From Adineta vaga (taxonomy: Eukaryota > Animalia > Rotifera): 64,000 nt of DNA. Shown piece after piece: positions 8,377-14,095 of the stretch. A model generated the notes under the pieces. The model was not told where the DNA came from and did not search any database. It saw only the letters and a program-made list of their open reading frames with translations. Made by a program: the position numbers and the translations under genes. Positions within the stretch are counted from its first letter, which is position 1. Every line of letters starts with the position of its first letter. The stretch is taken from positions 5,890,001 to 5,954,000 of the forward strand of contig CP075497.1 of NCBI GenBank assembly GCA_021613535.1. The letters run 5' to 3'.

Positions 8377-8719
8377 ATAAGAAGTGAACTTTGATATTTT
8401 TCTAAACTTATTTAAACAGAAGATATTTCACTCTCGATAATGATCTTTCATTCTTGTTTGTTTTGTTATTATTTTCTCTTTTGTTATGCATGCAATGTTC
8501 AATATCTTTTCATTCTCTGCACTTACGATTGTATCGGCAATCTTTACTTTGAGATGAAAAGATGATTGATCGTTATTTTGTTTTTTTTCTAGTTTACAAA
8601 AAAAAGAAAAATTTTTAACGAACATATTATCTTCGTATTTATTCGTATCCATGGAGATGAGCAGATTAAAATGAAATTGATTGTTTAAAAAAATTTATTT
8701 TCATATCGCTGCTAACTAA

Positions 8720-11700
8720 TTACAAAGATTGAATATCAATAGTTAAATTCGGATGTGAGAAAGGTATAAGCCAAAGAGTGACAAAATAGGAAACAAATGT
8801 TGCTGTAAAATAGATATAAAAAAATAAACGATCAATAATTAAACCAATAGCAAGCCATTGAAGACGATATTGAAATCCAGTATTTGAAGATTTTGATGGA
8901 TCTTGTTTTTCACGATTTCGTTTGACAAGTAGATCAAGTAAATTCTGATCAAATTGTGTATATTGACCTTTACATTGATTATAATGATGGAGAATATTTT
9001 CAATTAATGTACTCGGTCTGTTTTGATTTGGTTCAACAACACAAATATTTGATTCTTCGTCCGATTGATTTTTATATTTAGATGATGTTAGCACCAATTG
9101 TTCGTTGTCATGCTCGTCAGAATATCGTGTTTGTTGTCGAATCATCAATGAATTTCCAGTTGCTGTTGTTGTTGTTGTTGTTGAACGTGAATGTGAATGA
9201 TGAGTACGAGAATAATGTGATTGATTGGATCGTTCACGTGTATAGAGTAAAACTTGTTGTAAAAGTAGATTTTCTATCATATTTTCATAATTAGTATCGA
9301 GTTCATTTTTATTTGTAGATAATGGCAAAGGATTTGGTTCACATGAAAGGCCATGTGCTGCGGTTGAATCTTCCTAAATCAAATAAAATTGTTAAGTTAA
9401 ACAGAGAAAAATAGAAATTGTAAAAAATCAGTAGAGTCTAAATATAAATGCAACACAATAAATATAATCACATTTATTTCTACACATGTTATTGCAATGA
9501 TTATGATTTGAAGAGAAAAAAAAACAGATATGTTCGAATATAATAATTAATAAGCTCTTCGAGGTAATGGCGTTTTTGGTATACGTATTACATCGTCATT
9601 TTTGACACCTTTTCGTACCCAAAGTGCGATAGCTCGACCTGCAAAGATAGCTGTTAAGATACTAGCTATCATATTTACTAATGCAATGGATAATTGTGTA
9701 CCAGCAAGCCCATAAGAAACGGATTCTTCTTGTGTACGATTATTTGAATTATCTTTTCCATTCGTTCGATAAAGTGAAATAATAAATGAAAAGTATACAG
9801 TCAAATAAATAGCAAACAATGCTGATACAACACTCATAGTAAATAATCCATAAATCGATGTATAAGATCGACGCATTGCAGCTAAAAGGCCCATAACACC
9901 AGTTAAAAGTGTAAAAAGACCAAATAAACTAGCTGGATATGTCCATGGCCACCAATGTTGATAATAATTCGTACTTCTATAAATATCATCAGTAGCATTA
10001 TTTGCTATATCGAAATTTGTTGCACCATTATATACGCGTGGAAATTCCAATATTTGTGTTAATAGACCGACAATTGTAAGAATAATCCCAAATATAAATC
10101 CATGTAAACCCCAATTTTCCCATAAATAATTTTCAGTAAACTTGACTTGTGCTTGCATTATCAATGTCTGTTGAAAAGTACTTTTGCTGTTTTGTACAAA
10201 CACGTCAGTAAAAGTAATGGCGATGAATATATCTTTCAATCATTCGTTCGTGATTTCTTCGCTTCACTGAATTACTTCCGTTCTTTTCCTCGCTTTACAT
10301 ATCAAAATATCAGATATACGTTATTTACGCATATATCTATTACTTTCTCTCGTCATGTTTTTCGAAGAAATATACTCACTTTTTGACTAAGAACAGTTTC
10401 AACTTTATTTTTCATACAAAGAATTGGTGGCAAATATTTCAATGCTAATTTAGTTAACCAACGTGGTGCACGATGTTTATCCGTTGTACACATAGCAGCT
10501 TGTTGATAAAGATTGGCAACAATAACTGCCATTATAACGGATATTGACTAAAATGTAAAAAAGTATTTTCAACATTCTTTGTTTTATTGAATAACTCACT
10601 GTTAGACTCATTACAATTGTTAAATAGATTCCTAAGAATAAACAAAAGGAATAATTTATGATGATATGAAAATTTTATCTACCTATAATTGGTACTGTAT
10701 CAGAAGTTGCGGGTACTTTCTCAGCAACCATCAACATAAACACAGAAAATGCAACAAAACATGTTAAACCAAGCGTTACTTTTTCACCCGAAGATGTGGG
10801 CAACCTATGAGTCAATGAACAAAATCATCGCATCTTTTTGAATAAAAATTCTATTATTCTTCATACCAGAATGACATACAAGTTAAACAAGAAAGCATAG
10901 CACATGGAATTATCACATTAAATATATAATACAAAGGACGCCGACGAATATGAACACCATAAACTAATTCTCCATAGGTTTTATTATTCTTCGTTCTGAA
11001 TGGAAAGCAAAATTCTAATAAATATTCTGAATATTTATAACAGCGAAGTCATTTGATATTAATCGTCAACAATGACTTGTTATTTTTTATAAATATAACA
11101 GAAAAATAAGATATTTGAAGAACTCATTTCTTTTTTTTTCATTCTATTAGAAATCTGATTAATCAGTCAATTGAAAAACATTCTACATCGCCGAATTCGC
11201 GTTCAACTGAAAACCAATTTAGAATATTTATCGTTTCTTTCTTCTAATAAAACGCTTCTATATTTACCGCCATACAAGACCTTGTTTAACATCGAGAATA
11301 GCCCAACCACTATTTCGTATATTTTCTGATTGTTGTTGATCATTTGTATTTGCAACAAGTTCATATTTTATCGATGAAATATCATAGATCCATGATGCAA
11401 ATTTCAAACCACATACTTGACGATCGAATGGAAAATATTGAATATTTACTTTACATGTCGTACGTAATTTCATCAACACAGGAAAGACAACTTCTCCTGT
11501 ATGATATACCATTACATATGGACCTAAAAAATAATAAAAGAAGACGAATGATTCAATGAAAACATCTTTCTTCTTACCATTAACGACACCTTGTGTTGGT
11601 GATTCACTTGTAAGATCAAATGCCGAATTATAGATATAACTATCAGGCAACCATATTCGATGTGATGGTAATCGAATACCTCGAATACCTACATGTTCTG

Positions 11701-12072
11701 ATTGATTCCAACCAAGATTTTCATCTTTCCACTTTTGTTCTATACGTACGTTGGTTGTTAATATTTGAGTTTTTTCTTCCTGAATTAAAAATTATACATA
11801 AAAATGAAGAATTTCTTCCGTGAAAGATTCTTACAAGTTCAAATAATTGTGTAATTTCCATTCGAAATGAAATGGTCACGACTGCATCAGAGTGTCTAAC
11901 TGGTCTTACACTTGGTTCATAATATTGTAATAATTTTCTTATTAATTGTTGTTCAGTCGTACAGTCTAATTTCGTAGAAAGATATGAGAGATAAATAATA
12001 ATTAAAAAATTACTCACCGGCATAGGAAATAATGAACATGAAAAATAAGAATACGTCGAAAGTTTTACTCAT
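8720..12072 (-). CDS. Cys-loop ligand-gated ion channel subunit, nicotinic-receptor-like, non-alpha type (multi-exon)
   Basis: Signal peptide, YEPSVRPV, WLPDSYIYNSA, Cys-loop CKVNIQYFPFDRQVC, RRRPLYYIFNVIIPC (M1), SGEKVTLGLT (cation-type M2), VPATSDTVPIIG, M3, and last exon 9373-8720 with WLAIGLIIDRLFF (M4). No vicinal CC in loop C. Start could be 12072 or 12039. Confidence 0.9.
9547..10158 (-). CDS. Four-transmembrane protein, MS4A/CD20-like, intronless, nested same-strand in the nAChR-like intron 9374-10379
   Basis: Open frame 10239-9547. Likely ATG at 10158 follows the acceptor ttttcaacag (AG at 10169-10168). Four hydrophobic segments; TYPASLFGLFTLLTGVMGLLAA..SVVSALFA resembles MS4A TM2-TM3. 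Family call is tentative. Confidence 0.7.
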   Translation of the reverse strand: MQAQVKFTENYLWENWGLHGFIFGIILTIVGLLTQILEFPRVYNGATNFDIANNATDDIYRSTNYYQHWWPWTYPASLFGLFTLLTGVMGLLAAMRRSYTSIYGLFTMSVVSALFAIYLTVYFSFIISLYRTNGKDNSNNRTQEESVSYGLAGTQLSIALVNMIASILTAIFAGRAIALWVRKGVKNDDVIRIPKTPLPRRAY

Positions 12073-13621
12073 ATAACTACACTGTATCAATAATGAATAA
12101 TGAGAATAGAAATGACAAATAGCATGACTTAATATGATTCTGATTGAGAAGAATATGTTGTTACTTTTTCCCTTGTCGACTGATGATGTGCTCTCATCAA
12201 AATCTATAGTAGACATATATATTTTCTTCTTCTCCTTCTTCTTCTTTTTTCTTTGTTCTTTCTTAGATTGTAAGAGAAAGAAAAAAAAGAATGTTAGTTC
12301 TCTTTTTCTGTACGTACTAAGAGCGTGATCGTCTTCTGTTTTCTTTCATCATCATCATCATCATTTGTCATTTGACGTTAGAATCCTATTCATCTACTCC
12401 ATTATAAGTCTACTCTATATTCTTCATTCGATACATAGTAAAAGCTAAAAGAAACGATCATCTAAACATCTGTCTGTACCTCGCGGGAAACTTGCAATGA
12501 GATGGAAATAAGTAGTCAACAAAATTTATCATTCGACACCATCAACAATCTTATTTATTATCTTTCTTTCTAAATGAGTAGCAAAGAAGAAGGGCAAAAA
12601 TGCTTGTCATATTTCTCAATCATTTGTTCTTCTCAACAACGTCTCTCAGAACGACGACTTAACATACATATATACACGCATGACACTTCCATTGACTCGA
12701 TACATGCATTTCCATATACATGTGTAGATGTATTGGGATTACTTATTGATAATAAATACAAGGCTATCATGGAATAGTCATGAAGAAAAAAAGAGAAGAA
12801 AATACTTCTCGCGACTTTGTTAGAGGACGAGCAATAGAAGAATTTGACATTATTATAAGCTATTTTCACACAGCATGTTTTTTATCGATAATTGTAACAC
12901 TTAAAAGAACAGATGTATATTCACTGTTGGATCATTTCTTATTGGAATTAAAAGATGAAATATATGTGAAGATAGGTTAGCAATTATTCGATGTTCTGAA
13001 AAGAATCTAACAACAAATAACAATTGTCTTGTCTTTCGACTAAATAAAAATTTTAATCGTGTGATTATCACTGTATACTCAGTTCTTTGAAATTATATTA
13101 TCACATACATAATTTCTGTAAAGTGTGCCAATCGATTTCAATGACATTCTCACCCTGAATGTCAAACAATTCTTATATAATTAACATTTCTAAACGATTT
13201 CATGAATAATAATAATATATATATATTGAAAATATCGAATTTATTCGTAATTATACTTGTAAACTCGTATATATAACAAAAACTGCTATGATCATTTATA
13301 TACAAAAGTTTCTATAACAATAATAATGTATCTGATCCATAAATTTGAGTGATATTTCGAAAGTTTATTCGATGTATTGCTTGATCACGATTTTCACTCG
13401 AATTGTTTTTTATTTTCAATTGTTGCTTTCTCTAATCGTCATGATTTGAAAGGCGTATTTTTGCTTTTCTTCTTCAATTTTTTGTGGCCGATAATGTTTT
13501 TAATGTTGAATAAACACTTCACCTCCTTTTTTCTCTCTTCTGGTATTTAAAAAAAAATTTAAAGCGAAGAGAAACAAACGAAAACTGTACATTCACATTG
13601 AAGAAATTATAAAATCTACTG

Positions 13622-14095
13622 ATGATAAAATTTTTGTTTATCGCCACATTTTTCGGTATGTTCTCAAATCTTTTCAAATCAACAGAAATCATTTATATTC
13701 TATCTTTATTTAGTTCTACTGAACTATGCTACTTCGTTCGACTGTTATGATTGTCAAAATTGTCAAATACCATTTAATAATCAAGCAAATACGGCCACAT
13801 GTACTACTGGAGTAAATCAATGTATAGTAAGTTTCGATGATGATATATTAGATTTATATAGAATTATTTGTTTTTATAGAAAATCACTGCAAAATTAGGT
13901 ACAGTTTATACATATGTTGCTAAACAATGTGGACCATGTTTGAATGAAACATTTTTATTTGGTGTAACTTATTTAAAAGTAGATTGTTGTTATGGATCAA
14001 CTTGTAATGGAACGACTACGTTATCAATATCGAAATTTTCAATCATTCTTTTTCTTGCTTTTTTATACATTTTAAATGTAAAATTGAATAAATAA
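13622..14095 (+). CDS. Ly6/uPAR three-finger protein, probably GPI-anchored (3 exons; absent from the ORF track)
   Basis: Spliced product MIKFLFIATFFVLLNYATSFDCYDCQNC...TCTTGVNQCIKIT...QCGPC...VDCCYGSTCNGTTTLSISKFSIILFLAFLYILNVKLNK*. It has a signal peptide, 10 Cys, a CCxxxxCN end motif and a hydrophobic tail. Confidence 0.88.

Follow-up and report, generated by a model that had tools for sequence, protein, structure and literature searches.

A probable CD20-like four-helix gene nested in same-strand orientation within the last intron of a nicotinic-receptor-like gene of the bdelloid rotifer Adineta vaga

It is known from the cholinergic locus, where VAChT lies in the first intron of ChAT, that an intronless gene can be placed on the sense strand of a suggestive host and be long retained there. 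Small membrane proteins of four helices that assist or join a receptor are known as well, namely NACHO/TMEM35A, MS4A2 in the immunoglobulin E receptor and the TARP/claudin-like subunits of AMPA receptors. The CD20-like or MS4A family (PF04103) includes CD20, MS4A2 (the beta chain of Fc-epsilon-RI), sarcospan and TMEM176. A locus to be compared with these cases is described here from 64,000 nucleotides (nt) of Adineta vaga DNA (GCA_021613535.1, contig CP075497.1; C6:5890001-5954000 of a 100.8 Mb assembly in six pieces), the whole of which is called the window; its base composition is 30% G+C and its typical introns measure about 50 nt, and where relatives of its proteins are named they come from bdelloids such as Rotaria magnacalcarata. 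On the minus strand, an open reading frame (ORF) with four transmembrane (TM) helices stands in the last intron of a gene resembling a non-alpha nicotinic receptor subunit, and with a probability of roughly 85% it is an independent, same-strand nested CD20-like gene. The likeness to VAChT is that of an intronless gene in the sense strand of a suggestive host, however here the host intron is the last and not the first, and no common 5' exon, promoter or functional link is shown.

The intron in question (9374-10379, minus strand, GT..AG, phase 0, 1006 nt) falls within the loop between the M3 and M4 helices of the host. The exon before it (10380-10547), fixed by RNA joints on both sides, encodes M3 and the C-terminus ...ETVLSQK, and ends with GTT GAA ACT GTT CTT AGT CAA AAA (last codon 10382-10380) followed by gtgagt, the donor GT being 10379-10378 in phase 0. 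The acceptor reads ...gatttag with its AG at 9375-9374, and the last exon (8677-9373), which begins at 9373 in phase 0 with GAA GAT TCA..., EDSTAAHGLSCEP, holds the rest of the cytoplasmic M3-M4 loop, the M4 helix, the stop codon 8722-8720 and the 3' untranslated region (UTR). Inside the intron, on the same strand, an intronless gene of 203 codons occupies 9547-10158, from ATG 10158-10156 to stop 9549-9547. A preliminary description of the locus, made from the letters alone, had given the donor gtgagt at 10379 in phase 0 and the acceptor 9374 leading to the M4 exon, and all these coordinates proved right in the sequence and in the RNA joint.

RNA was available from four runs of two studies (X1 and X2 of P1, X5 and X6 of P2) as assembled contigs, and all results on RNA are given at that level. 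The contigs are RNA-derived, because the seven short host introns are cleanly spliced out of them, with zero coverage. The host joint 10380->9373, skipping 1006 nt, was assembled in X2 and X5, that is in one run of each study, with 22 nt on the short side, the contig stopping at the G/T variant 9350. The nested ORF was transcribed in all four runs (9424-10318 in X1, 9351-10281 in X2, 9351-10160 in X5 and 9398-9860 in X6), and the mean depth of its contigs equalled or exceeded that of host-exon contigs, a comparison of per-contig means which is qualitative only; unlike the short host introns, this one lies on abundant RNA. Two RNAs are made from one stretch, and the host mRNA excises the nested gene within its 1006-nt intron. 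Gaps separate the M3 exon from the nested RNA at 10282-10378 in X2 and at 10161-10378 in X5; no contig bridges the two in these runs, and therefore the nested RNA is a separate unit there.

The preliminary description had also offered a second reading, in which the M3 donor 10380 is spliced to the AG at 10168 and the ORF serves as an alternative last exon, so that its four helices replace M4 and a Cys-loop protein of seven TM helices results. The AG 10169-10168 (minus strand), for which no use was seen, is reached by tacttttcaacag and followed by ACA TTG ATA ATG; as had been stated, it opens in phase 0 into the four-helix ORF, the frame running uninterrupted from 10167 over ATG 10158 as far as the stop 9549-9547. 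Donor and acceptor thus agree in phase, the frame is open over the 9 nt into the ATG, and the topology would be permissible. The site had been called a pyrimidine-rich acceptor, and this stands as to the AG and its phase but not as to its strength, which is weak (of the 20 nt that precede the AG, only 10 are pyrimidines). The joint 10380->10167, named in the preliminary description together with 10380->9373 as the junctions to be compared, is absent from the contigs of all four runs of both studies, whereas the normal joint was assembled in two of them. In X1 and X2, the contigs follow the genome without a break across the AG.

Comparison of relatives points in the same direction. In a read-in test of ten loci, including the second copy of the pair in this genome (L009), the host donor is in phase 0 at every locus, however in-frame entry into the ORF is impossible at three of them: in L009 a TAA immediately abuts the nested ATG, and in L006 and L015 an in-frame stop lies 24-36 nt 5' of the ATG and is followed by no AG in phase. 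Of the AGs that precede the ATG, the best pyrimidine-rich one is in phase 0 in the window, 1 or 0 in L001, 2 in L002, L005, L006 and L015, and 1 or 2 in L007, the best acceptor thus being out of phase in L002, L005 and L007. Because in-frame entry is not kept across loci, the phase match of the window is a one-in-three coincidence, which is how cautiously the preliminary description had rated it; of the nesting and phase that were to be compared in relatives, nesting is kept and phase is not. The start methionine of the nested protein is conserved, and none of 66 family representatives, found among 1.84 billion proteins searched, has the length of about 540 amino acids (aa) expected of a fused product. 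Given the RNA joints and the unconserved phase, the seven-helix chimera was rejected as very improbable.

A related reading inserts the nested gene as an internal cassette, by the joints 10380->10167 and 9592->9373, and places four helices in the M3-M4 loop of a receptor with eight TM helices. It is suggested by a public Rotaria magnacalcarata model (P0021), which starts at an internal Met, is without TM1 and joins its last three helices at ...GVKEQD to the receptor M4 exon. The window holds an unused GT (9590-9591, minus strand) after ...KNDD, where GAT is followed by gtaata in phase 0, at the very position of the P0021 fusion donor, and an even number of helices would preserve the topology. 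Nevertheless, the joint 9592->9373 is absent from the contigs of all four runs, and the tail beyond GT 9591-9590 is conserved as protein, stop included. The truncated start of P0021 and the presence of a normal nested protein of 205 aa (P0006) in the same species are typical of an automatic mis-join, and P0021 is probably such an annotation error, brought about in all likelihood by the same-strand nesting. The eight-helix receptor was rejected on the missing 9592 joint, the conserved tail and the mis-joined model, and its probability is regarded as practically negligible.

The independent same-strand gene is favoured further by the age of its position. The order M3 exon, four-helix ORF and M4 exon on one strand is found in the window, L001, L002, L005, L006, L009 and L014; in L007 and L015 the M3 exon is followed by the ORF and the contig ends short of the M4 exon. 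L001, L002-L004, L005 and L006 have the same order and share common neighbours. The distance from the host donor to the nested ATG is 180-234 nt across loci, the host M3 exon is 67-86% identical to those of relatives, and M4-exon homologs were found by tblastn in all relatives whose contigs extend that far. The diverged second copy in this genome (L009, on C3, 56% identity) is likewise nested; nesting in both copies means that it is older than their duplication. No receptor exon lies within 1.5 kb of any of four remote paralogs in this genome (23-29% identity). The Brachionus homolog follows an Ig/EGF gene, and the 8 kb upstream of this homolog are free of receptor exons; that of Pomphorhynchus contains introns and has no receptor nearby, and that of Neoechinorhynchus is intronless and stands alone. 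These non-bdelloid homologs, from one monogonont and two acanthocephalans, may be paralogs, and in the species sampled nesting is confined to bdelloids. Nothing relevant on genes nested in the introns of nicotinic receptors came from a literature search.

As a separate observation, a Cys-loop receptor gene of Neoechinorhynchus agilis (L018:17855-20029) lies 7 kb downstream of the four-helix homolog on the same strand, with a claudin-like gene and an opposite-strand gene in the interval; this proximity could be chance or a remnant of an old linkage.

The nested protein has 22 homologs at 54-66% identity (word search), all of 176-237 aa except P0021, while an exact-sequence look-up of the window protein gave no record. 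The homologs share an aligned start Met and 35 invariant positions, among them H-x-WPWTY (residues 68-74) and T154/Q155. Conserved motifs are PRVYNG, NYYxHWWPWTY, AGRAIALC and the C-terminal P.P.RAY, and this tail is kept together with the stop. An AlphaFold2 model built on the family alignment, with a mean predicted local distance difference test score (pLDDT) of 72.8, has four long helices at 16-44, 73-96, 99-132 and 143-180, and a first extracellular loop of 28 residues which is disordered in the model and carries N-x-T sequons for N-glycosylation.

As to the identity of this protein, weak but consistent signals point to a distant CD20/MS4A-like member of a small family, whose named members are mostly from rotifers and acanthocephalans. 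It resembles the CD20-like family in its length of about 200 aa, its four TM helices and its short loops, and differs from it by its own motifs (PRVYNG, NYYxHWWPWTY and AGRAIALC) and by the 28-residue first loop. Weak matches to Pfam CD20 occur in 18 of 21 family members (best E 3.4e-6, none above the cut-off), and a protein-language search places the nested protein next to CD20-like clusters at 0.89. The exhaustive profile search, from which the 66 representatives come, names matches in Brachionus calyciflorus, Didymodactylos carnosus, Neoechinorhynchus agilis, Pomphorhynchus laevis and the annelid Owenia fusiformis. The profile of the family alignment A1 reaches P0050 (E 1.5e-12) and P0080 (E 1.8e-4), both of which lie above the CD20 cut-off (37.4 and 54.5 bits respectively) and one of which is the Owenia protein; hhalign of A1 against the annelid P0050 gives 97.1% probability. 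In a Foldseek search against the PDB, the top matches are 8y81_B and 8k7t_B, both MS4A2 or Fc-epsilon-RI beta (E 0.013-0.03), with template modelling scores of 0.55-0.58 by query and 0.69-0.72 by target; CD20, synaptogyrin and sarcospan follow at lower ranks, all matches have E >= 0.013, none reaches E <= 0.001, and TARP chains stand far down the list at E about 0.9. Of the profile and structure searches proposed in the preliminary description it can be said that the profile link to CD20-like proteins was obtained, but the Pfam cut-off was missed and the structural matches did not go below E 0.013.

Other identities were tried and rejected. Tetraspanin (PF00335) scores 19.8 against a cut-off of 32.1 bits, and whereas a tetraspanin has a large second extracellular loop with a CCG motif and conserved cysteines, neither loop here contains a Cys and the first is the longer of the two. 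MARVEL (PF01284), the name given to P0006 in a public database, matches none of 21 bdelloid members, and the Brachionus protein P0026 reaches 27 of the 32.8 bits needed. No sequence or fold match to NACHO/TMEM35-like proteins was found, a search of the PDB by sequence profile turned up nothing beyond a glycoside hydrolase at E 0.032, taken as a chance match, and the best row of an ESM-Atlas shape search was a tetraspanin cluster with a template modelling score of 0.45, nothing there being useful.

According to the RNA contigs, the host is a Cys-loop receptor gene of nine exons on the minus strand. Besides the M3 and M4 exons it comprises 12018-12189+, 11834-11965, 11576-11778, 11268-11521, 10865-10995, 10682-10802 and 10600-10631 (together 10600-12189), each with an open frame in translation. 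The contig joints define seven short introns of 51-272 nt, all GT..AG on the minus strand. Exon translations place the Cys-loop CKVNIQYFPFDRQVC, with the spacing C-x13-C and FPFD, in exon 11268-11521, the motif of the M1 helix in exon 10865-10995 and the M2 helix, GEKVTLGLT...VAEKVPATSD, in exon 10682-10802. The ligand-binding domain Neur_chan_LBD (PF02931) is matched by the host exon 11264-11650 with 63 bits (E 3.5e-17; the cut-off is 26), while both matches to Neur_chan_memb (PF02932) are sub-threshold, with 18.7 bits (E 0.0022) for the M3 exon and 17.3 bits (E 0.006) for the M4 exon. The host is like nicotinic acetylcholine receptor subunits in its ligand-binding domain, its Cys-loop (C-x13-C, FPFD), its M2 (GEK...VAEK.PATSD) and probably its long M3-M4 loop and its M4. 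Unlike the alpha subunits, it has no vicinal Cys-Cys of loop C in the exon preceding M1 (TKNNKTYGELVYGVHIRRRP...), and because of this it is assigned to the non-alpha nicotinic type, a class assignment made from Pfam searches and translations taken exon by exon.

Several results weigh against an independent CD20-like gene. The window protein scores 14.6 bits with Pfam CD20 against a cut-off of 27.9. Assembled contigs lose rare isoforms and true 5' and 3' ends, and a chimeric junction at low level is possible because such isoforms are dropped. A transcription start site, cap or spliced leader of the nested RNA was not seen in the contigs, which cannot show 5' ends. In X1, a host contig (10305-10547) crosses the M3 donor unspliced and overlaps the contig of the nested gene; it is either unspliced pre-mRNA or read-through transcription, and therefore a part of the nested RNA may originate from the host promoter. 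At the other end, contigs that cover the 3' region of the nested gene continue past the M4 acceptor, thus a separate poly(A) end of this gene is putative. Notwithstanding this, the independent nested MS4A-like gene, the first of the readings in the preliminary description, is borne out by its 22 homologs, by RNA in every run, by a Met, stop, tail and poly(A) signal that are all kept, and by the CD20-like signals.

The read-through contig is also the starting point for an operon-like explanation, which concerns the production of the RNA only and not the identity of the gene, and whose likelihood is contained in that of the nested gene. According to it, the nested gene would lack its own promoter and be carried on the host pre-mRNA, from which it would be released by intronic polyadenylation, by spliced-leader trans-splicing at an AG shortly 5' of the ATG (10168 in the window), or by both. 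The overlap of the two X1 contigs fits this, as do a pyrimidine-rich AG that occurs in any phase 2-46 nt before the ATG at most loci (L009 and L014 excepted) and same-strand nesting retained since before the bdelloid genome duplication. The spliced leader is common in bdelloids; a leader of 23 nt on more than half of transcripts is quoted from Pouchkina-Stantcheva and Tunnacliffe (2005) in a passage of PMC1925144. However, no spliced-leader letters were found on the loose ends of contigs of the four runs, contigs being unable to show 5' ends, the contigs of X1 and X2 are colinear with genomic DNA through the AG, and in X2 and X5 coverage is interrupted between the M3 exon and the nested RNA. 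A loose end of X2 at 12189 was considered as a spliced leader and rejected, being genomic sequence shifted by one base, and the homolog contigs checked for a 5' spliced leader or host exons (L007, L014 and L015) proved genomic, with introns. Co-transcription is on balance judged unlikely; if true, the receptor and the four-helix protein would be co-regulated, like VAChT within ChAT.

A short conserved element fits an intronic promoter equally well. The motif CAGTGAAGCG (10260-10269, minus strand), about 85-110 nt 5' of the nested ATG, has the counterparts CAGTGATGCG, CAATGATGCG, TAGTGAAGCG and similar ones in relatives, its general form being CAGTGA[AT]GCG or CAATGATGCG, and is the best-conserved intronic stretch of alignment A2. 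It is aligned in L001, L006, L007, L009 and L015, where it is preceded by a purine-rich run and the neighbouring intron sequence is unalignable. This element may act in a promoter or as an enhancer, or belong to the 5' UTR. Downstream, a candidate poly(A) signal AATAAA (9473-9478, minus strand) lies 68 nt past the nested stop. In a scan from the nested stop to the M4 acceptor or the contig end, AATAAA was found 11-151 nt past the stop in 8 of 9 loci and ATTAAA in the ninth, against a per-locus shuffle expectation of 0.04-0.33. The only visible poly(A) end is at about 8677, where contigs begin and the loose end of X6 is a T-run.

For the independent nested gene, the following course of expression is proposed. 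The nested gene would make its own mRNA, beginning in the intron between about 10160 and 10320, and translation would proceed from its own Met at 10158 to its own stop at 9547. The mRNA would end either by its own AATAAA or at the host 3' end. The in-phase AG at 10168 would then be a coincidence of this copy, serving at most in the 5' UTR or as a trans-splice acceptor.

Two further observations were made on the transcripts. When the M3 donor is left unused, a case seen in the X1 read-through contig, only eight more codons (VSIFLRKT) are read in the receptor frame before a stop (10353-10382, minus strand), which would yield a receptor cut short after M3; the extension is not kept in relatives. 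Single-base differences between the assembly and the RNA contigs recur across runs and studies at 9350, 9428, 9678, 9913 and 10161, with 9678 C>T present in all four runs; variation between strains or alleles is a likelier source of them than editing.

About 1.5 kb from the receptor 5' end, and head-to-head with it, lies a gene of three exons (13622-14095, plus strand) whose product combines a signal peptide with ten cysteines, the series closing with CCYGSTCN, and with a hydrophobic tail, and on this composition looks like a Ly6/uPAR three-finger protein with a glycosylphosphatidylinositol anchor; Pfam searches on its single exons gave no match. It is conserved in place at 60-71% identity in L001 (2182-2507), L002 (4140-4487) and L006 (3201-3541), always opposite to the receptor strand, and in each of these three a second, weaker copy (about 31% identity) stands nearer to the receptor.

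A more ambitious proposal combines these genes into a module of a receptor and its helpers. In it, the nested CD20-like protein would serve its host receptor as an auxiliary subunit or as an assembly factor, possibly together with the Ly6-like neighbour. Its RNA would arise on the host pre-mRNA and be set free by trans-splicing or by polyadenylation within the intron. Such a module is held to be rather improbable, and a partnership of the nested protein with the host receptor, the role that the nesting brings to mind, is speculation. If it were true, splicing versus polyadenylation of one intron would set the ratio of receptor to helper.

Same-strand nested genes are already known, and this pair is old and neatly conserved, with nothing mechanistically new shown. 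The analysis removes the tempting idea of a Cys-loop chimera with seven or eight TM helices, and at least one public Rotaria model (P0021) is flagged as mis-joining two genes. The nested pair and the Ly6-like gene form a candidate set for the tuning of invertebrate nicotinic receptors by small membrane and three-finger proteins, and the pair offers a way to study how the splicing of a host intron is compatible with a same-strand gene that lies in it and has a candidate poly(A) signal of its own.

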